Below, in pieces: positions 1 to 33,873 of a DNA stretch of 34,640 bases (the stretch's first letter is position 1; each line of letters opens with the position of its first letter). The translations under genes were made by a program, and so were the position numbers. The notes beneath the pieces were generated by a model that saw only the letters and a program-made list of their open reading frames with translations, ran no database searches and was not told the origin of the DNA. Source of the stretch: Basidiobolus meristosporus CBS 931.73. Taxonomy: Eukaryota > Fungi > Basidiobolomycota. Location of the stretch: NCBI GenBank assembly GCA_002104905.1, contig MCFE01000801.1, positions 1 through 34,640 on the forward strand. The letters run 5' to 3'.

Positions 1-70
1 CACTACTGATAGATCTCATGGCAAATCTGATAATACCTAGGTGGGCTAACAAAACAATCATAGAGATAGC

Positions 71-190
71 ATGGCAGCTGGGCCTGATTTACTGATGGCA
101 GCTGGGCCTGATTTACTGATGGCAGCTGGGCCTGATTTACTGATGGCAGCTGGGCCTGATTTACTGATGGCAGCTGGGCCTGATTTACTG
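71..190. repeat. 24-bp minisatellite ATGGCAGCTGGGCCTGATTTACTG x5
   Basis: Five perfect head-to-tail copies ending 179 bp upstream of the ATG at 370. Confidence 0.97.
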
Positions 191-369
191 ATGGGTCTAT
201 AGTGATCACAGTGCCATAGAAACATATCTGAGGCTCTGTTAGTGGAGATGACTGGCAAGGAGAAAAAGTATTTAAGTCCAAATGGTCACCACTGGTATAG
301 CATCATCCTATCTTGCCTCAACTCATTAGTGGTATTCCTATAAAAACTCATCTCTTTCTCTTAGTTAAA

Positions 370-801
370 ATGAAGTTCTCTTTCAGCAATCTCTCACTGG
401 CCACTGTTGTTGGTGTTCTTTTCCTTGGAACCACACTCTCCCTTCCCCATGGTCAGGCAGATGCAGGTACCAGCAAAGTTCAGAAGAGAGGCTACTCATA
501 CTATGACTATGATGATTGCTGTGACCCCTGCTATGATCCTTGTTATGATGATTGCTGGGATCCCTGCTGTGATCCTTGCTATGATCCCTGCTATGATGAC
601 TGCTGTGATCCCTGCTGTGACCCATGCTGTGACCCATGCTGTGATCCTTGCTGTGACCCTTGCTGTGATCCTTGCTGTGATCCTTGCTGTGACCCATGCT
701 GTGATCCCTGCTGTGATCCATGCTGTGATCCCTGCTATGATCCTTGCTATGATGATTGCTGTGACCCATGCTGGGATGATTGCTATGATGACTGCTGCTG
801 A
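370..801 (+). CDS. Secreted Cys/Asp/Pro-rich tetrapeptide-repeat prepropeptide, copy 1 (143 aa)
   Basis: True start is AAAATG at 370 (the track ORF begins at an upstream TTG). MKFSFSNLSLATVVGVLFLGTTLS is signal-peptide-like; QKR at residues 38-40 is a Kex2-type site; then GYSYYDY and 24 x D[PD]C[CYW]. Variation among identical tetrapeptides is confined to synonymous third positions (GAT/GAC, CCC/CCT/CCA, TGC/TGT), which supports this frame. Confidence 0.85.
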   Translation: MKFSFSNLSLATVVGVLFLGTTLSLPHGQADAGTSKVQKRGYSYYDYDDCCDPCYDPCYDDCWDPCCDPCYDPCYDDCCDPCCDPCCDPCCDPCCDPCCDPCCDPCCDPCCDPCCDPCCDPCYDPCYDDCCDPCWDDCYDDCC

Positions 802-1174
802 GTTGGGTACCATAAAGTGCCCACAGCTAGAATTAGCTAATGCCAGTGCTGCAAGTTGTACTGTGCTGGTTTTGCATCACCTAAATTACTCAATGTCTGC
901 AATTTTGAATAAAGTCACTCTTGTTAGCTGATATGTATATATGATAGATTGTGATTTCAGGGATCAGCATGTGGCTCTTATTTATCAAGCACTCTCCCAT
1001 CATCAGGGCATAAACAAGTGGAGTACAAAAAAGAAAGCTGCTGTTTAGGGTTAGTCAGCCTACACTAGCTTTTACTTGGGTCTGGGCAACAAAAATGAAT
1101 CTGTGGTATAAAATATTCTTGCAAACCAGCCTACTTTTACATCACTGACTTGACCTTCATTTCTGCCAGAATTA

Positions 1175-1245
1175 TGGAGCTTGTGGGAATTGAACCCTGC
1201 ACCTGAAGCACTAAGGCCCAGCTCTAAACCCAACTGCCAGACATC
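1175..1245 (-). other. tRNA-like 3' half / Pol III B-box remnant in the repeat unit (also at 2395 and 3591)
   Basis: The minus strand reads ...GCAGGGTTCAATTCCCACAAGCTCCA: an exact GGTTCRANTCC B-box followed by an acceptor-like end. No convincing 5' acceptor strand or D arm, so it is not called a tRNA. Confidence 0.35.
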
Positions 1246-1314
1246 ACTACTGATAGATCTCATGGCAAATCTGATAATACCTAGGTGGGCTAACAAAACA
1301 ATCATAGAGATAGC

Positions 1315-1410
1315 ATGGCAGCTGGGCCTGATTTACTGATGGCAGCTGGGCCTGATTTACTGATGGCAGCTGGGCCTGATTTACTGATGGCAGCTGGGCC
1401 TGATTTACTG
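1315..1410. repeat. 24-bp minisatellite x4
   Basis: Four perfect copies upstream of CDS copy 2. Confidence 0.97.
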
Positions 1411-1589
1411 ATGGGTCTATAGTGATCACAGTGCCATAGAAACATATCTGAGGCTCTGTTAGTGGAGATGACTGGCAAGGAGAAAAAGTATTTAAGTCCA
1501 AATGGTCACCACTGGTATAGCATCATCCTATCTTGCCTCAACTCATTAGTGGTATTCCTATAAAAACTCATCTCTTTCTCTTAGTTAAA

Positions 1590-2021
1590 ATGAAGTTCTC
1601 TTTCAGCAATCTCTCACTGGCCACTGTTGTTGGTGTTCTTTTCCTTGGAACCACACTCTCCCTTCCCCATGGTCAGGCAGATGCAGGTACCAGCAAAGTT
1701 CAGAAGAGAGGCTACTCATACTATGACTATGATGATTGCTGTGACCCCTGCTATGATCCTTGTTATGATGATTGCTGGGATCCCTGCTGTGATCCTTGCT
1801 ATGATCCCTGCTATGATGACTGCTGTGATCCCTGCTGTGACCCATGCTGTGACCCATGCTGTGATCCTTGCTGTGACCCTTGCTGTGATCCTTGCTGTGA
1901 TCCTTGCTGTGACCCATGCTGTGATCCCTGCTGTGATCCATGCTGTGATCCCTGCTATGATCCTTGCTATGATGATTGCTGTGACCCATGCTGGGATGAT
2001 TGCTATGATGACTGCTGCTGA
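1590..2021 (+). CDS. Secreted D[PD]C[CYW]-repeat prepropeptide, copy 2 (143 aa)
   Basis: Translation identical to copy 1; no nucleotide difference spotted by eye. Confidence 0.85.
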   Translation: MKFSFSNLSLATVVGVLFLGTTLSLPHGQADAGTSKVQKRGYSYYDYDDCCDPCYDPCYDDCWDPCCDPCYDPCYDDCCDPCCDPCCDPCCDPCCDPCCDPCCDPCCDPCCDPCCDPCCDPCYDPCYDDCCDPCWDDCYDDCC

Positions 2022-2534
2022 GTTGGGTACCATAAAGTGCCCACAGCTAGAATTAGCTAATGCCAGTGCTGCAAGTTGTACTGTGCTGGTTTTGCATCAC
2101 CTAAATTACTCAATGTCTGCAATTTTGAATAAAGTCACTCTTGTTAGCTGATATGTATATATGATAGATTGTGATTTCAGGGATCAGCATGTGGCTCTTA
2201 TTTATCAAGCACTCTCCCATCATCAGGGCATAAACAAGTGGAGTACAAAAAAGAAAGCTGCTGTTTAGGGTTAGTCAGCCTACACTAGCTTTTACTTGGG
2301 TCTGGGCAACAAAAATGAATCTGTGGTATAAAATATTCTTGCAAACCAGCCTACTTTTACATCACTGACTTGACCTTCATTTCTGCCAGAATTATGGAGC
2401 TTGTGGGAATTGAACCCTGCACCTGAAGCACTAAGGCCCAGCTCTAAACCCAACTGCCAGACATCACTACTGATAGATCTCATGGCAAATCTGATAATAC
2501 CTAGGTGGGCTAACAAAACAATCATAGAGATAGC

Positions 2535-2606
2535 ATGGCAGCTGGGCCTGATTTACTGATGGCAGCTGGGCCTGATTTACTGATGGCAGCTGGGCCTGAT
2601 TTACTG
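2535..2606. repeat. 24-bp minisatellite x3
   Basis: Three perfect copies upstream of CDS copy 3. Confidence 0.97.
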
Positions 2607-2785
2607 ATGGGTCTATAGTGATCACAGTGCCATAGAAACATATCTGAGGCTCTGTTAGTGGAGATGACTGGCAAGGAGAAAAAGTATTTAAGTCCAAATG
2701 GTCACCACTGGTATAGCATCATCCTATCTTGCCTCAACTCATTAGTGGTATTCCTATAAAAACTCATCTCTTTCTCTTAGTTAAA

Positions 2786-3217
2786 ATGAAGTTCTCTTTC
2801 AGCAATCTCTCACTGGCCACTGTTGTTGGTGTTCTTTTCCTTGGAACCACACTCTCCCTTCCCCATGGTCAGGCAGATGCAGGTACCAGCAAAGTTCAGA
2901 AGAGAGGCTACTCATACTATGACTATGATGATTGCTGTGACCCCTGCTATGATCCTTGTTATGATGATTGCTGGGATCCCTGCTGTGATCCTTGCTATGA
3001 TCCCTGCTATGATGACTGCTGTGATCCCTGCTGTGACCCATGCTGTGACCCATGCTGTGATCCTTGCTGTGACCCTTGCTGTGATCCTTGCTGTGATCCT
3101 TGCTGTGACCCATGCTGTGATCCCTGCTGTGATCCATGCTGTGATCCCTGCTATGATCCTTGCTATGATGATTGCTGTGACCCATGCTGGGATGATTGCT
3201 ATGATGACTGCTGCTGA
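2786..3217 (+). CDS. Secreted D[PD]C[CYW]-repeat prepropeptide, copy 3 (143 aa)
   Basis: Translation identical to copies 1 and 2. Confidence 0.85.
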   Translation: MKFSFSNLSLATVVGVLFLGTTLSLPHGQADAGTSKVQKRGYSYYDYDDCCDPCYDPCYDDCWDPCCDPCYDPCYDDCCDPCCDPCCDPCCDPCCDPCCDPCCDPCCDPCCDPCCDPCCDPCYDPCYDDCCDPCWDDCYDDCC

Positions 3218-3730
3218 GTTGGGTACCATAAAGTGCCCACAGCTAGAATTAGCTAATGCCAGTGCTGCAAGTTGTACTGTGCTGGTTTTGCATCACCTAA
3301 ATTACTCAATGTCTGCAATTTTGAATAAAGTCACTCTTGTTAGCTGATATGTATATATGATAGATTGTGATTTCAGGGATCAGCATGTGGCTCTTATTTA
3401 TCAAGCACTCTCCCATCATCAGGGCATAAACAAGTGGAGTACAAAAAAGAAAGCTGCTGTTTAGGGTTAGTCAGCCTACACTAGCTTTTACTTGGGTCTG
3501 GGCAACAAAAATGAATCTGTGGTATAAAATATTCTTGCAAACCAGCCTACTTTTACATCACTGACTTGACCTTCATTTCTGCCAGAATTATGGAGCTTGT
3601 GGGAATTGAACCCTGCACCTGAAGCACTAAGGCCCAGCTCTAAACCCAACTGCCAGACATCACTACTGATAGATCTCATGGCAAATCTGATAATACCTAG
3701 GTGGGCTAACAAAACAATCATAGAGATAGC

Positions 3731-3826
3731 ATGGCAGCTGGGCCTGATTTACTGATGGCAGCTGGGCCTGATTTACTGATGGCAGCTGGGCCTGATTTAC
3801 TGATGGCAGCTGGGCCTGATTTACTG
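3731..3826. repeat. 24-bp minisatellite x4
   Basis: Four perfect copies upstream of copy 4. Confidence 0.97.
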
Positions 3827-4005
3827 ATGGGTCTATAGTGATCACAGTGCCATAGAAACATATCTGAGGCTCTGTTAGTGGAGATGACTGGCAAGGAGAA
3901 AAAGTATTTAAGTCCAAATGGTCACCACTGGTATAGCATCATCCTATCTTGCCTCAACTCATTAGTGGTATTCCTATAAAAACTCATCTCTTTCTCTTAG
4001 TTAAA

Positions 4006-4401
4006 ATGAAGTTCTCTTTCAGCAATCTCTCACTGGCCACTGTTGTTGGTGTCCTTTTCCTTGGAACCACACTCTCCCTTCCCCATGGTCAGGCTGCTGC
4101 AGGTACCAGTAAAGTTCAGAAGTGAGGCTACTCATCCTATGACTATGATGATTGCTGTGACCCCTGCTATGATCCTTGTTATGATGATTGCTGGGATCCC
4201 TGCTGTGATCCTTGCTATGATCCTTGCTATGATGACTGCTGTGATCCTTGCTGTGATCCCTGCTGTGACCCATGCTGTGACCCATGCTGTGATCCTTGCT
4301 GTGACCCTTGCTGTGACCCTTGCTGTGATCCCTGCTATGATCCTTGCTATGATGATTGCTGTGACCCATGCTGGGATGATTGCTATGATGACTGCTGCTG
4401 A
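4006..4401 (+). pseudogene. Diverged copy 4 of the D[PD]C[CYW]-repeat gene with a premature stop
   Basis: Codon 40 is TGA (4123-4125) where the other copies have AGA. Downstream the frame stays open with 21 tetrapeptides (7 central DPCC instead of 10), ending TGC TGC TGA at 4401. Confidence 0.88.
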
Positions 4402-6680
4402 GTTGGGTAGCCTAAAGTGCCCACAGCTAGAATTAGCTATTGCCAGTGCTGCAAGTTGTACTGTGCTGGTTTTGCATCACCTAAATTACTCAATGCCTAC
4501 AATTTTGAATAAAGTCAATCATGTTAAGCTGAACTGCTCAATTTTGAGTAAAAATGAACAAAAATTAGCTGTGTGAATTAGAGATCACAGTATGTACAAG
4601 TTACAATGCAGGTACATTGTACTTGAGCATGCAAATATCGCTGAAACTGATAAAGCTAACTGGGAGACACAACATAGAAGGCTAGGACACATTGGGGAAC
4701 AGAAATTGAGCCAATTGGTGAAAAATGAGCTTGTTTTAGGCCTAAATTACTCAATTCCAATCAAGTTGAGTGTCTGTAAGGGATGTTCATATGGCAAACA
4801 ACCAAGGGCATATTTAAGAAGCTCAGGAGGTATCAACACTTCCATATTTTTGGCTAATGTACACACAGACATATGTGAGCCCATGAGAGCACTGCCATTG
4901 GAGCCAAGAGATACTTTAAGACAATTATTGCTGACATGGGGAAGTTAGAATTGTATATACTTCCTCAAAAAAGGGATAAGGCTATAGAGATGTTGAAACA
5001 CTTCAAGGCCATGGTAGAAACAGAAACCAGGTGTAAGTTGAAGATACTTTGAAGTGACAATAGAGGGGTATATGGCTTAAAGAAGTTTACAAAAGACTGC
5101 TCATGTACTGATATTCTTCAGTAGACCACTGTTCCAAGTACACCACAGCAAAATGGAGTAGAAGAGGGTGCAAATAGAGCAATAGTACTAATGGGAAGAT
5201 CTATGCTACATGATAAGGGAATGAACTACAAGTTTTGAGCTAAATTCTTTGCTACAGTAGTATACAGCATGAATAGATGCCCAACAACAGCAGAACATAA
5301 TTCTACATGCTTTAAAGTATATATAGGCAAAAAATCAGACCTCTAGCACCTCAGGATCTTTGACAGTGGTGTCCTTAAGAACATTGCTGAAAAAAATGCT
5401 CAAAGCCGGAACCATAGAGTAGAAAAGGGATCTTTCTTGGGTACTATAATGATACTAAAGAGCATAGAGTGTATGATGGCAAAATTCTAAAGCTGATCAA
5501 GAGCAGGGACATTGTATTTGAGGAGAATTCAGATCAGAGAGCCAGATAAATCTTTGGTCAGCTGCCTGCGGATTCCATCCACACTAATGAAGAAGATACA
5601 CACCAGATTCAATAAGATACAGAAGATAATTCCGCCTGCTCCAGATCAGAGCAGATTATCCCAGTTAGGAGATCTACCAGAATAAGAAATGCCCCTGGAT
5701 CCTGGTGGCAGACATCCAATAATCATGAAGAAGCTTAACTTGCATTTTGTGCCAAATCTCCAAATCTGGAACAGGCAATACAAAGTCCAGATGATATTAT
5801 GTGGCATCAAGCCATGCAGGAGGAGTACCAAACACTGATCAAAGCAAAAATATGGGAATTGGTAGATTTACCAAATGGGAGAAAGCCAATAAGATATTGA
5901 TGGATCTACAAGATCAGGATAACCTCAAATAATACCATTAATTAGTTCAAGGCTAGATTGGTGGCTAAAGCCTATTCCCAGAACCAGAGATTAGACTAGA
6001 AGGGGACATTTGCTCCAGTTGCCAAGTTCAACTCCATAAGGGTGATTCCAGCCCTGGCAGCTGTACACAGTCCAGATCCACACCAGGTGGATGTCAAAGC
6101 AGCCATTCTCAATGGGGACTTGCAAGAAACTATATATTTGAAGTAACCAGAATGTTTTACCAGTCCCAATGGACCCCATAAGATGTGCAGACCCAGGAAA
6201 TTTTTGTAGGGGCTTAAGCAGGCACCTAAAGCATGGTATAACAAGATTGACACATTTCTAGAGGAGACTGGGCTCATTTGCAGTGGAGTTCACAGTACCT
6301 ATGTGAAACAGCTCAAAAAGAGGGTGATCATCCTAATTATTGATGTGAACAACCTAAAAATAGCTACAAGCAACCAGGAGGTACTTAAACAGATGAAATC
6401 AGATCTCCTCAGCATGTATGAGATAAAGGAGCTTGCAAAATTGAGCTATTTTCTGGGAATTGAAGTGAACTTTGATATATCTACTTAGAAAGTTGGGCTG
6501 AATCAGTCTAAGCTTATCAATGTAATTCTTAGATGCTTCAGAATGGAAAATTGCAAGCCTGCAGCTACCCCTATGGAAAATAATCTAAATTAAGCAAATC
6601 TCAGCCAGTTTAGACATAAATGGCTCAAATATGGACCTAAACTCTCCCTATCAATCAATGATTGGTAGCCTGATGTACTC

Positions 6681-10358: not shown

Positions 10359-13300
10359 TGATATGATCTACAGCTTAGATATTGAAGTCAGATTGATCTT
10401 TAGTCAAACAATTAGTCATATATTTTGACTATCATTATATCAGTGTTATCTATTAAATCAGTGGCATTAATCAGCAAATGAATCAGCAGATACTTATCAG
10501 ACATAATGTATATACTAATTAGGATCATGTTGGGTGATGATGACACAACCAAATGAGTCATCTGTCACAACCTACATAATATAATACAATTAGTTGGTAA
10601 TTGATCTGGCCAAATGAATATCAGGAGCTGCCTGAACCTCAATAAAAATCAGTTCAGGTCTTAGTGAATACAATACTAGCTAAGCTCTCTATTCCTTTAC
10701 AACTCTTATATCAAAAATTGTAACATTGGCATCAGCAACTACCAGAAACTTCCCTCCTAAAGAAAGTGGAAGCCTCCCCCCATGATGTCAGAAAATCAAG
10801 AACGGATGATTGCTATGCAGCACATCCTAACAGCAACAGTTACTCCAGATTCTTAGCCAGCAGCAACAGGGAATGACTACCATGGTGCAGAACCAGCAAA
10901 ACCATGTCAAGAGTAACTTTAGTGTGAAGGTCAACTAGTACCTTGGTAGAGTCAATGCAAATGTGGGAACTTGGCTCTTCCAGACTGAAGAAGCTCTAAA
11001 GGCTAAGGGCATTGCTCGAGAAAGCAAGTTGCATTATGCAGCCTCTCACCTGGTAGATGCAGCTTTAAGGTGGTACTACAAGAAGATAAGGTAAGCAACC
11101 ATTATGGGATGCTCTACAATCTCTACCTGGGATGAGTTTGTGTCAGAAATTCAATATGCTTTTGAACCTCCACACCAGCCAACACTACTAAGAAGAAAGT
11201 TGAAGACACTCAGACACAAAGGAATAGTTTCAAAGGACATCTATGAATATAGATGTCTACTTGGACAAATTGATAGAATGGACCCCCTGGATCAAGTGGA
11301 ATACATTATTCATGGATTGAAAGAAAGAACTTGTAAGGAAGTGAATTATTGAAGACCTCAGACTATTGAAGATGTCATCAAGATTGTCTTTAACTATGAC
11401 TCAGCTATGTTTAGAGTTGGGAACCCTACAGTGACTAACCAGAGAGGCTACAATCATGATAAAGAGGACAATCAGAGGCAGTACCAATGGAAATAGATAC
11501 TGTGCAGAAGAATCCTACCTCAGAAGAATGTAAGTGGAAAGGACTTTGCTTTAATTGCCACCAGCAAGGACATATTGCAAAGTATTGCCCTCAGAGAAGA
11601 AATGGACACCAAGCATCAAGAAACTTCAGCTATATTGAAGCTCTTGAGTGTAGTAACATGGAGGATAAACTCAAAGAAGACTTGGTTCTCACCTTCCATA
11701 TGACAGAAGAGTACCTTTCCCAGATGACCATGAACTCAGGAAAGCTATTATACTTGAATGGAGTTATCAATGTTGTACCTGCCAAGAGTGTGATTGATAT
11801 AGGAGCATTGCATGTGTACATGCCAGAGCAATCTACTTTGACGGCTGCAATCAACTTGGAACCCACCAAATCAGCTTCAGTCTTAAAAGTTGATGGGAAC
11901 TCTCACATAATGAACCGTATTATTCAGCCAGTAAGGATGAAGATCAATGACTATGAAGAAGCCCTACAGGTCTATGTATTGGGGAACAGCAAGTTTGACC
12001 CTGTACTTGGAAAGAGCTGGCTACTTTGTTGTAATTCATCAATCAACTGCACAACCCATGCTACTCAGATCTAGACGGACAACTAGATCTATGAGCTAAT
12101 ACCTGCCATACTGAATCTCAACTTGGTCAATTCCAGTGTGTGTGAAACAAGTAAACTTAGCAAGACACAGTTCTGTAAAGCACGTACAAAAGGCACCCAG
12201 ATGTTCCTCATGGTGGTATTATGGAAGGATTCCTCTACTCTAGCACCCCAGAAGGTCCAGACTCTTTTGAAGGAAAATTCTGACGTATTTCCAGAGGAAC
12301 TTATAAGCCTACCACTAGTCAGAGATGTGGATCATACCATTGACATAGGAGATAGTTCTCCAGTGAGTAAGACACGTAATAGAATGAGTCCATTGGAGTT
12401 GGAAGCAATGAGGATACAAATAAATCAGTTACTGGAGCAAGGATAGATCAGACCCAGCAAGTCATCTTGGGGAGCACCAGTACTCTTTGTGAAAAAATGG
12501 ATGGAACACTCAGGATGTGCATGGACTACAAAGCCCTCAACTCAGTTACTGCAAAGAATACGTACCCCCTACCTTGGATTGATGAGCTTTTGGACCAACT
12601 CAATGGAGCCACTATAATCAGTAATACTGGCCTCATGTCAGGATACAATCAGATTGGGGTGAAGCCAGGAGGCATCCCTTAGATGGCATTCAGGACCAGA
12701 TATGTACATAACAAGTACTTAGTTATGATTTTTAGCCTCACCAATGCCACTGCAACATTCATGGCCCTGATGTACACTGTCTTCCTGGAGTACTTAGACT
12801 AGCTTGTGATAATCTACCTGGATGACATATAGATATACAGCAAGACAGAAGAGGATCACTTGGTGCTTATTGAAAAGGTCCTGACAAAGCTAAGTGTGAA
12901 CAAGCCCTATGGCAAGCTAGCCATGAGTGAATTCTTCAAGGAACATAATGAACATCTGGGACAAATAGTGACTAACACAGGAGTGACCGTAGACCCTAAG
13001 AAGGTTGAAGTTATCAATAATCTGAAGCAGCCCCATAGCTTATCAGAACTCAAATCATTCCTGGGAATGGTTTCCTATTATTGAAGATTTGTCAAGTCCA
13101 ATGTAAGTATTGCAGCCCCTTTAGCTGATATCCTCAAGACAGACAGTGCCTACAAGTGGGACATAGCTTGTGAGACTGTCTTTCAGATGCACAAGAATAA
13201 ACTTGCTAAGCTGCCAAGCTTAAAAATACCCAACTTCAGAAAATAGTTGACTCTGAGCACAGATGCTTCAGATTATGCAATTGGTGGAGTGTTGAGCCAA

Positions 13301-13588
13301 GAATACAAGGGAAAGGACTACCAAGTTGCCTTTGAATCCCAGAAACTGAACTCAGTGGAACAAAACTACCTGGAGCCTAAGAAGGAGATGCTAGCTATAA
13401 TACACTGCTTGAAGACATAGAGATGCTATATGGAAGAAGTCAAATTCACTGTAAAGACTGATCATGCCTTGCTCATGTATATAGTTACTCAGACGGTAGA
13501 AGAATTACAAGATGGAGTGAATACATTCAGCAATTTGATCTGGAGATTTTCTACTGCCCTGGGAAAAACAACACAGTTGCTGATGTCT

Positions 13589-15493
13589 TGTTATGATCTG
13601 CCGCCTGAATGTTTAAGTTAGATCAGTTTTTAGTCAAATCAATTAGTATATGTTTAGGTTATCAGTATATCAGTATTATCTATGAAATCAGTAGCATTAG
13701 TCAGCAAATGAATCAGCAGATCCGTATCAGACAGAAATAGATATACTAAGTAGGATCTTATTGGGTGACAATGATGCAATCAAATGAGTCATCAGCAACA
13801 ACCTACATTAGGAAATACAATTTGTCAGCAATTGATCTGGCAAAATGTGTATAAGGAGCTGCTTGAACCTCAATAAAAATCAGTTCAAGTTTTAGTGAAT
13901 ACAATACTGGCTAAACTCCCTATTCCTCTACAACTCTTATACCAAGACTTGTAACATTAGTAGCAGCAAGAACCAGAAACCTCCCTCCTGAAGAAAGAAG
14001 AAACCACCCTCAAGATGTCGGAGAATCAAGAATGGAAGAATGCCATGCAGCAAATCCTGGCCCAACAGCAACAGTTATCCCAGATCCTCAGCCAACAGCA
14101 ACAAGGAATAACTACCATGGCTCAGAGCCAGCAAAGCCCTGTCAAGAGCAACTTTAATGTGAAGGTCAACCGGTACCATGGCAGAGTCAATGAAAACCTG
14201 GGAACTTGAGCCTGCAAGACCATTTGAGAGATGGGGAATTGACTTTATTGGAAGACTGCCAACTACTAGGATATGCAACTGTTAGATCCTAGTAGCTATT
14301 GACCATGCCACTAAATGGCCAGTTGCTAAAGCTGTACCAATAGCCAGTGAACAAGAAGTTGCAAGTTTCATTTACCATGAGATCCTGATGAAGTTTGGAT
14401 GCCCTGTGGAGATCTTATCTAATAGAGGTGCAAACTTTATGGCAAAGATATTAGACGCTTACCTGGAAATGCAGCAGATCAGACACTTGAAAACCTTGGC
14501 ATATCACCCCAGAACTAATGGAGTCACTGAGCGATTTAATGGATTATTTGGAAAAATGCTGACCAAGTATGCAAATGGAGTTGTCAGTAGATGGGATGAG
14601 TATATAGACCAAGCACTCTTTGCATGCAGAGTCAGAGTACACAACACCACCCAGCAATCACCATTTTACTTAGTTTATGGATGTGAACCAAGGATTCCAG
14701 GAGATCTCACACAACCAAAGCTTACAGACACCTTAGAAGATGAACTCAGTCAGCCAAGTAGGCACCAGCAACTGGAACAAAGACGTCAAGAGGCACAGAC
14801 CAAAGTATCTCAAAGTGCAGAAAAGATGAAGCAGAGATTTGATAAGACTATAGGACCAGAAGCATTGACAGTTGGGAACTTTGTATTGCTAAGAAACAAC
14901 ACTTGGAAGAAGTTTGAGCCACAATGGACAGGACCATTCAAGATCATCAGAGAATGTCCATTTGCAACTTACCAACTGGTGGACAAACAAGGCAATATCC
15001 GGGAAGACTTAGTGCATAGGGACAGACTCAAGCGTGCAAGACTTGCTGATAATACTGAACCATCAAGATATTGGTATCACAAGAAAAGAGATTCAGGAGA
15101 ACCCTCTCAGCTTTAGTAGGTGAGAATGTTATGATCTGCTGCTTGAATGTTTAAGTTAGATCAGTTTTTAGTCAAATCAATTAGTATATGTTTAGGTTAT
15201 CAGCATATCAGTATTATCTATGAAATCAGTAGCATTAGTCAGCAAATGAATCAGCAGATCCTTATCAGACAGAAATAGATATATTAAGTAGGATCTTATT
15301 GGGTGATGATGATGCAATCAGATGAGTCATCAGCCACAACCTACATTAGAAATACAATTAGTCAGCAATTGATCTGGCAAAATGTGTATAAGGAGCTGCT
15401 TGAACCTCAATAAAAATCAGTTCAAGTTTTAGTGAATACAATACTAGCTAAACTCCCTATTCCTCTACAACTCTTATACCAAGACTTGTAACA
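13589..15493 (+). mobile_element. Nested, internally deleted (non-autonomous) gypsy element with both LTRs (13589-13956, 15127-15493)
   Basis: The LTRs differ by about 11 substitutions and 1 indel. TSD GTCT/GCCT; removal restores host RNase H GKNNTVADAL. PBS-like TAGTAGCAGC after the 5' LTR. About 65 gag codons are joined directly to integrase. Confidence 0.93.
14209..15116 (+). pseudogene. Gypsy integrase (rve core and C-terminal region) of the nested element
   Basis: WGIDFIG..AIDHATKW..EILSNRGANF..YHPRTNGVTERFN..GPFKI..VHRDRLK. One in-frame TAG at 14283-14285; the second catalytic Asp appears as Asn (SNRG). Confidence 0.9.
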
Positions 15494-16329
15494 GCCTTAC
15501 CAAGTTTAGAACAAGTTGCACTACTCAACTTGGTGTATGAATCAGATTGGCCTAGCCTTTTACCAAAGTACTTGGAGGACCAAGCCATTCCTATTGAGGT
15601 GGATGAAAAGATCAAGAAGAAAATCCAGGATGTTGCCAGCAAATTTGTAGTACAGGATGAAACACTCAACCCAATTTTTGATGGAAGCCCTATTGCCTAT
15701 TGCCCTCATGTTGCTTGCCTGAATTTAATAAATAAGCTACTTGATGGATTTGGACATCATGGTATTGAAGGAGTCTATAGCCTTGGGAAAGCCAGAGCAT
15801 GGTGGCCTAGAATATACCAAGACATTGAGAAGCTAGTGAGAACATGCCCAAATTGCCAAATCAACCAAGGCTAGCCACAGGGAATTGCTGAAATCTTTCC
15901 CTTGTAGCCTGTGAGACCATTGAAAGATGGGGAATTGACTTTATTGGAAGACTGCCAACCACCAGGAAATGCAACAGTTGGATTCCATTAGCAATTGACC
16001 ATGTCACTAAATGGCCAGTGGCTGAAGCAGTACCTGTAGCCAGTGAACAAGAAGTTGCAAGTTTCATCTACCATGAGAACCTTGTCAAGTTTGGATGCCC
16101 TGTAGAGATTTTATCCAACAAAGAAGCAAACTCTATGGCAAAACATTGGAAGCTTACTTAGAAATGCAGCACATCAGACCCTTGAAAACCTTAGTGTATT
16201 TACCTAGAACTAATGGAGTCACCAAGCAGTTTAATGGACTATTTGGAAAAATGCTGACCAAGTATGCAAATGGAGCTGTTAGTAGATTGGATGAGTATAT
16301 AGACCCAGTGCTTTTTGCTTATTGAATGG

Positions 16330-27867: not shown

Positions 27868-30382
27868 TCAGGTGGCGGTGGTGGTCGAGGCGGAGCCCAA
27901 GTGTTGACTTGAGTGCACGTCTTTCTTCACCGGGATGTCCATCTCCTTCCCGAAATCGAACACCTCGAACCAGGTGGCGTTCCTCCGCTGCACCGCCGCC
28001 ACACAACGTCGGTCATCAAATTGGACTTGCCACACGTGCTGCAACCCCACCAGTAGGTCCCGAATGAACTTCCCCGTGCGAACGTCCCACATCTTGAGGG
28101 TGGTTTCGGAGCCGGAGATCACCTTCTGGTCATCATGCTGGAAGCATGTGATGGCTCCGGTATGGGTGGAGAGGACGTTACGACACGTGCCCGAATCGGG
28201 ATCCCAGACGCGCAAGGTTGCGTCGGCCGCAGCGGATACCAGATGGTTAGGAGTCAGACTAAGCAAACCGACCAGCGATGAATGACCTTCAAGAGGAGCA
28301 GATTAGCATTCAGAACAACAAGGGGCTCGCGCAGATTCACTCACCTTCCAGCGCGTAGATGCATGTCCCATGCTTAAGACTCCAAATCCGGACGGAGCAA
28401 TCCATGCTGCCAGAGATGCATCGGTTCCTGTCCTTATCGATCACCACGCTATACACCTTTTGCGTATGCCCCTCCAGCCTCCATTTGCATTCACCCGTCA
28501 TGACATTCCACACGCGAACCGTACAATCGTAGCTACCACTCACCACTGTGTTTCCATACGCCGCAATGGCTCGAACTGAATGCGCGTGTCCCATTAACGA
28601 ACGCAGGTAATATGGGTTCGGAACGGTCTGTACCTCATTGGATTCGCTGCTCTCCGGGGGATACCTCGGGTCGTCAGCGGCCGGAAGCTTCCATACCCGC
28701 AATGTGGAGTCGCGAGAGCCAGTCACGATGATGGGGTACGGTGGCTCCATGACAGGCTCCCCCTCAGGATCCGGGTTCACGTTGGTAGGTATGAGGATTT
28801 GCAGGCATCGTACGGTTGACGAATGGCCGCGAAATGTGTGCGTATTGACCCCTTGTTGGATATCCCAGATTCGGACGGTACGATCGGTGGAGCCGGTCAC
28901 CAGAGTGTTGCCGTAGTACTGCAACGCCCACACCCCACCGTTATGTGCCTGAAGCTTCTTCCTCAGACTACCGGTCTTCGTATCATAGATGTGGATGTCG
29001 AAATCTTCCGTGCCAGACACGATCTTGTCCGAATCGAACTGCAGGCAGGTAACAACGCATTCGCTGTGTCCCTCAAACGAGATACTGGAGCATCGACCAC
29101 GCATCCAATTCCGCCGAATTATATGATGTCGTCGGTACAGGTACTTGTATGAATGCTTTGCGACCGCCTCAAGGCTATCGCGGGGATCTAGCGGGGCATT
29201 GAGCCCAGGAATAGGCACCTGAAGGTCGATCTTGGCCGTCGAACCACCAGGCTCGCTACTCCCGTAGTTAAGCCGCGTGCGTTGCTCGTCTGACTGATCT
29301 GCATGTGTCGGTTTCTGCTCGAATGCGTTTAGAACCATCCGATCTTCTTCAATCAATTGGAATCCAGCCAGGTCAAACAAATTCTTCCAGACCTTTGCAT
29401 CAGAGTCCACCACTTTCCTCCAACGCTTACTAACCCTGGCCGAGCGGCAGGCACTTTGGGCATCCAGATAGCCCACCACCTTCAATCCCAATTCGTACGG
29501 GAGTTTCCCCAAGAAATCCACTTTCAGACTGGGCAGTATGGTGGATGCGACGAACTGGAGGGTTCCGGTGTTGGACCTTTTCAGCATCTGGAAAAGCATG
29601 GCTTGCTGAAGCTCCGCCGGCAATGAATCGAATCGGTTCAACAATTCAGATAGATTGGGAAACGCCGGGGCTCCAATGCTTTTCTGCTCCTCAGTATCTG
29701 ACTCTTCTTCCTCTGTTTTGAGATCTGCTCCCTCCATATCCATTGTGTTTTCTACATGCACCGGGAACGATGGTGAGCGACAAGGCGAGGGTAAGGAAGC
29801 AGACTCTTCCAATACCATCGAGCTATTTTCCGCTGCTCTCTCGTTATCTTGAGGGGGGGAGTTGGAAGGAAGTGAAGAGGTTGCATCCGTACTGGAGATC
29901 TGCATGAAACGAGATCGTTTGTATTGTGTTGGAGAAAAGCTTTCAAGTATCACGAGGGGGCTTTCCGTATCGTTAGCGTATCGTTTGAGCTTCGTCTGAG
30001 ACAGAGAAAAGTTCGATGCTACCTAGAAACATGCCATACATTGGTTGACTGTTGGTACGTTTAGAAGAGGTGTTAGAATATGTACCTTTATGGGCTTGGA
30101 TTCTGAGGAAAAGCTTTCGCCTACATCTTCCAAACAGCTGATTTTCAAAGCAGTTGGTGTGGGGTAGTTCTTCAGCGGATACTCTACCGAAGTGAACGGC
30201 AGATCTACCGGGGTTGGGAAGTGCTTTGTTTTTCTTGGTTTTGTTTCAGTTGTAGTTGTAGTGCTAGTGGTAATGATAGGCTGTAACGTGGAGGAAATCA
30301 GGGAGGGCTGTGAATGCAAGTCCACCTGTGAGAGAGAATCGGATGTTTCTTGTGGCTCCGGGGGGAGGCCGGAATCCTGCAT
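27868..30382 (-). CDS. CDC4: SCF F-box/WD40 substrate receptor Cdc4/Fbw7; exons 30382-30086, 30022-28345, 28286-27868 (797 aa predicted)
   Basis: F-box DFLGKLPYELGLKVVGYLD..RVSKRWR. Cdc4-typical WD repeats GVWALQY, GHSSTVRCL, IVTGSRDSTLRVWKLP, RNRCISGSMD, GAITCFQHD, RRCVAAVQR. Introns 30085-30023 (GTACAT..CTAG) and 28344-28287 (GTGAGT..CTAAT..AAG) keep the frame and give LEGHSSLVGLL. Confidence 0.93.
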
Positions 30383-31044: not shown

Positions 31045-32823
31045 ATGACTCATAAAGGTAATAATAATAATACTGAGATTGGTCCCGATCTAGATGAAGG
31101 CTACGACGAACAAAAAGTTGAGATTCCAGAATGGATGGACCACTGGGGAGACGAACAAAAAGCAGGTTAGCATGGTTCTCATCGAAAGTCCGCCTCCCGT
31201 ACAGGCCTTAAAACTCACCAGCTTCTTTACACAGAGTTTGCTTACCAGCTACTTCTATCAGTCAACCCACAAACCGTCGAGGGAGTCATCTCTCGCCTGA
31301 AACCCCTACTGTACAAAGATTTTATCACCCACTTACCGCATGAGCTGGCTCTTCATATACTTAGCTACACAAACATCCCAACCTTAGGAAGGGTATCCTC
31401 GGTGTGTAAGAAATGGCACGAAGTGATCGATGATTCCGGATTATGGAGAAAGATGTACTTTGATGAAGGCTGGCAGGTCAAAGAGCTCGAGCTAAACTCG
31501 GCGGTTCAGAGCGAGGAGAGGAACGAGACGACTGATCCTCAGCAAGAACTACTAGAGGAGTTGAACAGCGGGATTGAGGAGGAAGACACCGAATCCTTGG
31601 TTTCCCCCTCTGAATTCGAATTCTCTTCAACACGTGTCAACGCGATTACGCGTCGCATCCCAGAGCTCTCTTTGCACGACGGGCTTACACAAAACGCATC
31701 CCTATCAACCATACAAAACGAGCAACGTCTTAACTTTGTCGGTTCGGCGATGGATACCCCTTTCAACTTGAACACAAGACGTATCCGTCGCTCCACTACG
31801 CTGTCCGGCTCCAGTAGAAGCAACCAGAACAGTGCCGCGCCTGTCCCAGTTCGTGACAACCCAGTTCTCATCTATAAAGATCATGTCAAGACGGTGAACT
31901 GGAGATATCTGGCCCAACAACGAGCCAGACTGGAATACAATTGGTCGCATGCTGGCTATCAACTCCGACGGTTGCCTGGCCACGCCGAAGGCATCTATTG
32001 CATCCAATTCGACTCGAAAAAAATCATCTCTGGCAGCAGAGACCACACGATAAAAGTATGGGATATTCAGAGTGGATACTGTATTTCAACGTACCAGGGA
32101 CATACTGCATCCGTACTGTGTTTGCAATACGACGAGGAGATCATCGTGTCCGGCTCCAGCGACTCTACAATCATCGTGTGGGACATCAAAACGGGAGAGA
32201 TCCTCCGCGTATTAACTGGGCACACGGAGCCAGTTCTGAATTTGAGTTTCGACAAAAAGCACATTGTCACATGCTCGAAAGATCGCACCATTCGGATCTG
32301 GGACCGTGCCTCGGGGACCCTACTGCGCACACTAACTGGCCATAGGATAGCGGTGAATGCGGTTCAATTTAAGGACGGGATCATCGTCTCTGCCTCAGGA
32401 GACCGGACGATAATGATGTGGGATTTGGAGACTGGTGCATGTCTCAAAACGCTCGTCGGGCACACCCGCGGCATCGCTTGTGTGCAGTATGACGGGAAAG
32501 TGATCATTTCTGGATCGAAGGATAAAACAATCAAAATATGGGATGCATCTTCTGGTGAATGCATGAAGACGTTAATAGGCCATACAGAGTTGGTCAGAAC
32601 CTTGCAATTCAATGACACAGTCATTCTTTCTGGCTCCTACGACCGGACCATCAAGCTGTGGGACCGGAAGTCTGGGGAGCTGCTAGGTGACCTCCGAGAC
32701 GGACATACCTGTAGGGTTTTCAAAGCTCAGTTTGACTCAACCAAAGTTGTGTCGTGTTCGCAAGATCACCATGTGCTCATTTGGGACTTTGCACACAACG
32801 TCGATGCTACATACTTGGCGTAA
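31045..32823 (+). CDS. fwd-1: F-box/WD40 protein of the beta-TrCP/FWD-1/Pof11 class; exons 31045-31165, 31235-32823 (569 aa predicted)
   Basis: Intron 31166-31234 (GTTAGC..CAG) joins WMDHWGDEQKA-EFAYQLL to the F-box DFITHLPHELALHILSY. WD repeats GIYCIQFD, GHTASVLCLQYD, VTCSKDRTI, VSASGDRTI, GHTRGIACVQY, RVFKAQFD..LIWDF closely follow the beta-TrCP pattern. The ATG at 31045 follows CTAAT..CAG, so an extra upstream exon is possible. Confidence 0.88.
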
Positions 32824-32950: not shown

Positions 32951-33873
32951 TTACAACGTATACCCTTTGCCCTTTCCGGAGTCAGGTCCATAGTCTTCCC
33001 CTTGCTTTGGCTGCTGATACCCTGCTGGGTGTGGCTCAACATACTCATCGTGCACAGGGGGTTGGTAGTCAGGCCCAACGTCCGGCTGCCCTGAGCCTGG
33101 TTGCGAGGGTGTGTAGTCATCGCCATGCTTGCCACCCTGCTCGTACTTCTGGGAATGGCCCTTATCTCCCGAGTACTCGTCAGGATGCTTGGAGTCTGGC
33201 TTGCCAGATGGGGCGTAGTCATCGTGGGCTGCGCCATTGCCAGACCCGTTCTTGTCAGAGGAATAATCGGGCTGCTGGTAGTCCTGTGGTGTGCTAGGGC
33301 GACTTCCCTGATATGTGGCTGGCTTGGTCGCTGGTTGGTAGTCATCCTTCAGTGGCTGAGCCTCAGGGTAGTCGTCACTCTTTGGCTGATAGTCATCATC
33401 CTTTGGGTGGAGGTTTGCATAGTCATCGTTCTTGGGAAGGCCCTCTGGATAGTCATCACCTAGTTTTGCTTGTTGATACGCAGCTGGTTTGGGGTCCACA
33501 TAGTCGTTTAGTGGTTGATAGTCATCACCCTTGGGATGGCCTCCGGGTAGTCTTCATTCTTTTGAGGGACTTCTGCATAGTCGTCTTTCTTGGGAAGGGA
33601 TTCGGAGTAATCGTCATTCTTAGGGCTGGCTTCGGCATAGTCATCGTTTTTGGGTTGACCCTCGTTGTAGTCGTCTTTCTTTGGACCACCTTCTTGACCA
33701 GGAAGTTTGTTGGTGTACGGGTCGGATGGTGGCGAGTCGTATGGCTTAGGGCCTTGAAGTGGGTTGTAAGGAGGGTCTTGGTAGGAAATGCCACCTGGAT
33801 CTTTAGGGATATACATGATGCTTGCAGAGCATGATGCTACAAGGAGAAGAGATTTCAATACAATAGACTTCAT
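32951..33873 (-). CDS. Secreted Pro/Asp/Tyr/Lys-rich PKxDDY-repeat protein, split by an apparent 1-bp frameshift (307 aa if repaired)
   Basis: Signal-like MKSIVLKSLLLVASCSA. Track ORFs 33873-33508 and 33499-32951 carry the same repeats in different frames; adding one C at ~33538 gives EAHPKGDDY, matching EAHPK in the paralog. Confidence 0.8.

Follow-up and report, generated by a model that had tools for sequence, protein, structure and literature searches.

Tandem-amplified genes for a predicted secreted Cys/Asp repeat peptide in Basidiobolus meristosporus

The metallothioneins (MTs), including the fungal Cu-thioneins and the CC-rich MTs of Tetrahymena, are characterized by a very high cysteine content (about 30% Cys in CxC, CxxC, and CC motifs), by few aromatic residues, and by a cytosolic location without a signal peptide; gene amplification is known at some MT loci and is an established way of acquiring metal tolerance, as with CUP1 in yeast. 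In the phytochelatins, (gamma-Glu-Cys)n, an acidic residue alternates with a thiol. Short repeats of CC and proline also occur in proteins of disulfide cross-linked matrix material, as the keratin-associated proteins (KRTAPs, C-C-x-P-x) and the male-specific sperm proteins of Drosophila (MSSP, PF03940, Cys-Gly-Pro), which are animal, intracellular, and not polyanionic, with periods of five and three residues, respectively. The Kex2-processed repeat peptide precursors of fungi (KEPs) and alpha-factor-like precursors are small secreted proteins with a signal peptide and KR sites, after which Kex2 cuts, and are subject to tandem gene amplification. Finally, the circumsporozoite protein of Plasmodium carries the Cys-free repeat NANP, with a period of four residues, whose NPNA units make serial beta-turns.

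The locus described here belongs to Basidiobolus, a gut-associated fungus that is the cause of occasional human infections, and lies on contig MCFE01000801.1 of B. meristosporus CBS 931.73, of which a stretch of 34,640 nucleotides was analysed (the window). Its first gene copy has the following anatomy:

370-801, plus strand: coding sequence of copy 1, 143 codons without interruption and a terminal TGA, from translation
370-459, plus strand: signal-like part of copy 1, aa 1-30
460-489, plus strand: pro-piece of copy 1, aa 31-40, with KR at its end
490-798, plus strand: mature peptide of copy 1, built of D-[P/D]-C-[C/Y/W] units

The product of copy 1 has the N-terminal sequence MKFSFSNLSLATVVGVLFLGTTLSLPHGQADAGTSKVQKR, with a hydrophobic core at residues 8-25 (9-residue Kyte-Doolittle means up to 2.6) followed by PHGQA, which satisfies the -3/-1 rule; the predicted cleavage after A30 would leave a 10-residue pro-piece. 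The prepro region comprises 40 aa, KR being residues 39-40, and the remaining 103 aa consist of C39, D31, P18, Y11, W2, G1, and S1; K, R, and H are absent. Cysteine represents 38% of the mature part and 27% of the whole 143 aa, aspartate 30% of the mature part; bulky aliphatic residues are absent and 13 of the 103 residues are aromatic. Downstream of GYSYYDY, 24 tetrapeptides are ordered as DDCC-DPCY-DPCY, DDCW-DPCC-DPCY-DPCY, DDCC-(DPCC)10-DPCY-DPCY, and a terminal DDCC-DPCW-DDCY-DDCC, the first three blocks obeying the grammar DDC[C/W]-(DPCC)n-DPCY-DPCY with n = 0, 1, and 10. When the register is moved by one residue, (DPCC)n reads as (CDPC)n, that is, as abutting CXXC motifs; the mature part includes 14 CDPC (CXXC), 15 CC, and 0 CxC motifs, and proline is present in 18 of the 24 tetrapeptides, with the same number of Asp-Pro bonds. 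A mass of ~11.7 kDa, a net charge of ~-32 at pH 7, and zero trypsin sites are calculated for the mature part, while a single-sequence AlphaFold2 model (pLDDT 48) is an implausible all-helix structure and is uninformative. The layout proposed in a preliminary description of this frame (signal-like N-terminus, pro-region ending in KR, mature repeat) agrees with translation, hydropathy, and the -3/-1 rule; its 103 residues, 39 Cys, 31 Asp, and lack of basic residues are exact by script count, and its grammar, with the three values of n and the terminal cap, was reproduced to the residue.

The same description treated the frame as a single gene, a view that has to be revised in favour of a tandem multi-copy family whose fourth copy is broken. 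The array and its right border are organized as follows:

1-4530, plus strand: four-unit head-to-tail array, with unit starts at 1, 1245, 2465, and 3661
1590-2021, plus strand: coding sequence of copy 2, identical to copy 1
2786-3217, plus strand: coding sequence of copy 3, identical to copy 1
4006-4401, plus strand: coding sequence of copy 4, interrupted by a premature stop, TGA at codon 40 (4123-4125), where KR has its Arg
71-194, 1315-1414, 2535-2610, and 3731-3830, no strand assigned: 24-bp perfect minisatellite ATGGCAGCTGGGCCTGATTTACTG, from TRF
4592-4948: Copia-type fragment with a gag_pre-integrase domain (Pfam), right border of the array

The units are 1244, 1220, and 1196 nt long, followed by a truncated fourth; on the left the array continues past the window edge and on the right it ends at the Copia-type retroelement fragment. 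Units 1-3 differ in the copy number of the minisatellite alone (5.2, 4.2, and 3.2 copies by TRF, with 4.2 in unit 4). This element holds the palindrome CAGCTG, is placed 180-300 nt upstream of each ATG, and could be either a repeated regulatory site or the product of plain slippage. Since copies 1-3 are identical in their non-coding DNA as well, the local array is uninformative on selection. Copy 4 has three DPCC units fewer than copy 1 and a frame that is otherwise intact beyond the stop; in its codons 16-44 there are 3 synonymous changes together with D31A and Y44S, besides the TGA, and its 3' UTR matches that of copy 1 at 118 of 125 positions. In addition, unit 4 is chimeric: unit 1 is matched with 100% identity over the first 70 nt of the unit and over the 175 nt preceding its ATG.

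As the 12-nt repeat can be read through without a stop in five of its six frames, an open frame by itself is weak evidence of a gene. An ATG (in the context AAAATG) opens the frame at 370-801 alone, which is also the only one to show a dibasic site and a signal-like start. Moreover, its 11 DPCC units are written in 5 DNA spellings; the 12-mer varies at its positions 3 and 6 only, which are third codon positions, and in this frame only are all the differences synonymous. The switch between Asp and Pro at the second position of the unit takes two base changes, and the one-step intermediate codons are absent. The other frames of the repeat were considered and rejected, being devoid of an ATG or a signal and coding for peptides that vary with the silent differences (e.g., ILAV/IPAV/THAV). 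The frame is thus taken to be more than a product of chance, because the DPCC spellings differ at third codon positions and the other frames are heterogeneous. By these sequence criteria the gene family looks real, unannotated, tandem-amplified, and so far limited to B. meristosporus, so that the observation is stronger than first stated, as it concerns a tandem family with coding constraint.

Diverged copies of the gene are found in a second set of sequencing runs. Runs X1-X4 (2016) contain the window at 0.91-0.93 of the sampled words, while runs X5-X7 (2013) come from a different sample with the same species label and are considered genomic DNA because their longest contigs reach 48-88 kb; they are probably isolate B9252, to judge from PMC7466969. 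The contigs of X5-X7 match the coding repeat at 90-99%, and their unmatched ends directly upstream read CTGCCACATGGACAAGCT..., translated as LPHGQASNAG, with a second variant PHGQASSAGS; the window counterpart is CTTCCCCATGGTCAGGCA..., translated as LPHGQADAGT, and 5 silent changes separate the two across 6 conserved codons. The contigs also match the KVQKRGYSYYDYDDCC region of the window (475-530), with 4 differences in 56 nt. In these diverged copies the LPHGQA/KVQKR prepro is retained at the protein level, and the DDCC-stop ending is kept with a different 3' UTR; an in-frame variant module, DDYYDDCYD, is also present. These features are read here as protein-level constraint across the isolates. 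In each run, ~75-105 different short contigs align to the repeat over window positions 454-934, and the depth of repeat words, which is uncalibrated against single-copy depth, amounts to hundreds to thousands per contig and tens of thousands when summed, which suggests many, varied copies of the family in the X5-X7 isolate.

Candidate regulatory elements around copy 1 are recognized as consensus matches only:

339-346, plus strand: TATA-like TATAAAAA, 31 nt before the ATG
269-275, plus strand: second TATA-like element, TATTTAA
909-914, plus strand: AATAAA, poly(A)-signal-like hexamer, 108 nt past the stop

If used as a TATA box, TATAAAAA would leave almost zero 5' leader in the 31 nt to the ATG. 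The region around AATAAA (~861-934) is among the few non-coding islands kept at 90% or more in the X5-X7 contigs. A further spacer piece, GGAGCTTGTGGGAATTGAACCC, is located at ~1165-1244 and at the corresponding positions of units 2 and 3, and its minus strand resembles the T-arm and acceptor end of a tRNA; a scan of the array with ARAGORN and Rfam returned no tRNA and no RNA family. The X5-X7 contigs cover positions 1185-1230 although the flanks are dissimilar, and this T-arm-like piece may be a dispersed SINE-like fragment.

The search for relatives was carried out at the level of sequences, profiles, structures, and metagenomic DNA. A word-index search of the whole protein against 5.8 billion proteins gave 12 weak matches, all of them CCDPCC low-complexity sequences of bacterial or metagenomic origin and none including the prepro. 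The preliminary description had proposed the prepro region as a query: run on proteins, it returned nothing, with zero matches both for the prepro alone and for a 58-aa N-terminal query intended for short fragments. An exact or near-identical protein is absent from public protein collections, among them sets assembled from sequencing runs. An exhaustive phmmer search against 1.84 billion representatives yielded 1363 matches, of which the best 24 are period-4 low-complexity sequences, mostly DPTx repeats, with the prepro covered by none; they include giant S/T/P proteins and one bacterial protein that carries both a SpaA domain and a CYDPC/EEPC repeat. In Pfam, zero families were matched by the whole protein at E ≤ 0.01, and at E ≤ 1 the mature part matched only PF03940 (MSSP), at 17.7 bits, under the cut-off of 21.2 (E 0.0028, no single stretch passing); at this threshold no MT, keratin-associated (PF11759, PF13885, PF01500), or RiPP-target (PF27846) profile was found. 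NCBIfam profiles gave zero matches, and the only matches among PDB sequences were circumsporozoite NANP repeats. Neighbours in the ESM Atlas score 0.47-0.67, which is the range of noise, and comprise keratin-associated proteins, a bacterial Cxxx-repeat modification target, and an oomycete mating-induced protein. Two degenerate DNA patterns, one for the KR/GYSxYDYDDCC junction and one for the module boundary DPCYDPCYDDCC, had 0 matches in JGI metagenomes, and no report of such a peptide or of secreted Cys-rich repeats of Basidiobolus was found in the literature. On the basis of these searches, relatives of the peptide appear to be confined to the B. meristosporus data; the initial statement that the family was not recognized holds for every library searched, with zero profile or sequence relatives.

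In comparison with the systems mentioned above, the peptide is similar to MTs in its very high cysteine content (38%, with 15 CC and 14 CxxC motifs) and in the multiplication of its gene, and to phytochelatins in the pairing of acidic residues with thiols. Unlike both, it has a predicted export signal and a pro-piece, 13 aromatic residues (11 Tyr and 2 Trp), no CxC motif, and a strict period-4 repeat with proline; the early caution against assigning it to the MTs, which are normally cytosolic, is borne out by the aromatics, the signal-like N-terminus, and the lack of an MT profile match. The KRTAP clusters are its nearest named neighbours in the ESM Atlas, at a score (0.55) no better than noise. 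The KEPs have in common with it a small precursor with KR and tandem genes, and their signal peptide has a predicted counterpart in its N-terminus; in contrast to them, a single KR is present and the repeats lack intervening KR or RR (K/R = 0 in the mature part), so that one long peptide would be released. The circumsporozoite repeat shares the Asx-Pro periodicity of DPCC, but it is Cys-free and not homologous, the match being an artefact of periodicity and composition; by analogy with NPNA, a rod with one turn per unit is suggested for DPCC.

Similar repeats are found in bacterial proteins (P0002, P0006, and P0007, and the planctomycete-like P0003, P0005, P0009, and P0010), which contain CC[D/K/E]PCC repeats, runs of CCDPCCDPC, and sometimes CYDPCYDPC, and which bear signal peptides or spore-surface-type domains. 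The likeness of these uncharacterised proteins to the peptide is limited to the low-complexity repeat, neither prepro nor module grammar being in common; because they are bacterial as well, convergence is the likeliest explanation at the sequence level. In the metagenomic proteins P0002, P0006, and P0007 (L001:6001-6714), CC[K/D]PCC repeats come first and a weak BclA_C-like (exosporium) domain last, with the Cys repeat occupying the place of the collagen-like stalk of BclA. The genomic context of two bacterial CCxPCC proteins consists of housekeeping neighbours and is uninformative. The product of the array falls within the operational class of small secreted cysteine-rich fungal proteins of under 300 aa (143 aa, signal-like N-terminus, high Cys, lineage-restricted) and would represent a lineage-specific repeat protein of this type, with an extreme composition unmatched in these searches.

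To the right of the array the window includes the following features:

11487-15874: longer retroelement remains, with zinc-knuckle-like gag, protease-like, and integrase-like ORFs and weak integrase C-terminal Pfam matches
27868-30382, minus strand: WD40-repeat gene with an F-box-like domain
31402-32823, plus strand: WD40-repeat gene, 1 kb from the preceding gene and on the opposite strand
32951-33873, continuing to 34640, minus strand: signal-bearing ORFs with PKxDDY-type acidic Tyr repeats, matching no Pfam family

Retroelement remains occupy the stretch from the array to the next genes. The products of the PKxDDY-repeat ORFs resemble the Cys/Asp peptide in being acidic, Tyr-rich, low-complexity, and predicted to be secreted.

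A role as a bulk extracellular surface or matrix component, disulfide-stapled, protease-resistant, and polyanionic, such as part of a spore, zygospore, or hyphal coat or of an adhesive, is tentatively considered plausible. The preliminary description had suggested, as possible functions, an exported metal chelator or biomineral template, or a spore-wall or adhesive protein polymerised through disulfides or dityrosine. According to the matrix model, the precursor would enter the secretory pathway, where removal of the signal peptide would probably take place after GQA (residue 30); a kexin (Kex2-type) cut after KR would then remove the 10-residue pro-piece to give the 103-residue peptide. In the oxidising environment of the secretory pathway the CXXC units would be oxidised to a series of short disulfide loops, and some bonds would join separate chains: each CXXC, with its turn-forming Asp-Pro, could close into a loop, generating a stiff chain with a dense polyanionic surface and without trypsin sites. 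The number of cysteines (39) is odd and gain or loss of DPCC shifts it by two, hence at least one thiol would be left for inter-chain bonds. Tyrosine, which adjoins cysteine at the module ends, may together with it provide additional cross-links between the chains, and divalent cations would be bound through the 31 carboxylates. A bulk product is argued for by the three identical copies, by the array being cut by the window edge, and by the high repeat depth in X5-X7; the lack of Lys and Arg, the proline-rich sequence, the carboxylates, and the multi-copy identical genes are compatible with bulk polyanionic material. Weak analogies are offered by the KRTAP neighbours (0.55), the sub-cut-off MSSP match, and the bacterial repeats that precede a BclA_C-like domain. 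Against a matrix role, one copy is broken, the neighbours are transposons and F-box/WD40 genes, and a link to a life stage or structure is absent.

The main rival explanation, possible if rather doubtful, is a metal binder acting outside the cell or in a compartment, an acid and thiol polymer similar to MTs or phytochelatins that would sequester Cu, Zn, or Cd through CXXC/CC thiolates or Ca through carboxylates, for detoxification or for metal capture in gut or soil. The content of Cys (38%) and Asp (30%), the 14 CXXC and 15 CC motifs, the absence of bulky aliphatics, and gene amplification as a route to metal tolerance speak for it, whereas MT profiles are without a match even at E ≤ 1, 13 aromatic residues in 103 are unusual among MTs, the predicted export signal would send the thiols into an oxidising route where disulfides are expected, and neither metal-responsive elements nor transporter neighbours are seen in the 34.6-kb window. 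The predicted export route, the aromatics, and the lack of a profile count in fact against membership in the MTs and not against the mode of action, as the chemistry allows metal binding. The difference of the family between isolates would also suit a bioactive peptide secreted against competitors or the animal host, as an anionic antimicrobial, an inhibitor of proteases or metalloenzymes, or a polyanionic partner of cationic peptides; such a function is unlikely, since no likeness to known antimicrobial or toxin families emerged from Pfam, PDB sequences, or protein searches, and the extreme low complexity is atypical of target-specific peptides.

A non-functional or decaying repeat, that is, a recently amplified 1.2-kb satellite-like unit whose frame is unused now or has always been so, is quite improbable: the nonsense codon in one copy, the transposon-rich surroundings of the array, and the five open frames of the 12-nt repeat are in agreement with it, but an AAAATG start, a signal-like N-terminus, and a KR site are not easily obtained by chance, the variation of the repeat units is exclusively synonymous, and the X5-X7 copies keep the prepro and the position of the stop at the protein level despite silent changes. 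Very little probability is assigned to a RiPP-like precursor, heavily modified by Cys cross-links or heterocycles through enzymes encoded elsewhere, or to a precursor of small fragments, in which passage through the stomach would free tetrapeptides at the 18 Asp-Pro bonds. No other peptide bond is as labile in acid as Asp-Pro, and heterocycloanthracin-type bacteriocins are among the weak Atlas neighbours, together with the bacterial Cxxx-repeat radical-SAM target (0.47-0.53); on the other hand, these scores are far under a meaningful level, neither of the two profiles matches, and an ORF for a modifying enzyme (radical-SAM, cyclodehydratase) is absent within the window.

Beside the matrix component, which is the reading preferred here, an exported polymer of thiols and carboxylates acting outside the cell can be envisaged, with low probability, as either a phytochelatin-like metal sponge or the polyanionic constituent of a glue or coat of the coacervate type. 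In the latter variant the peptide would be paired with cationic peptides and cured via CXXC disulfides and Cys-Tyr chemistry, for example in the adhesive tip of capilliconidia or in the zygospore wall. To our knowledge, such a material or metal-handling system has not been described in fungi, and either variant, if true, would be new to them. As for the peptide itself, if expressed it would be among the most extreme natural Cys/Asp polymers, with abutting CXXC motifs on a polyanionic backbone and multi-copy encoded, and it would provide a model for the behaviour of tandem CXXC strings as disulfide-looped rod, redox buffer, or metal binder. In the biology of Basidiobolus it would constitute, again if expressed, a chemically distinctive addition to the amplified secreted-peptide genes of this fungus.
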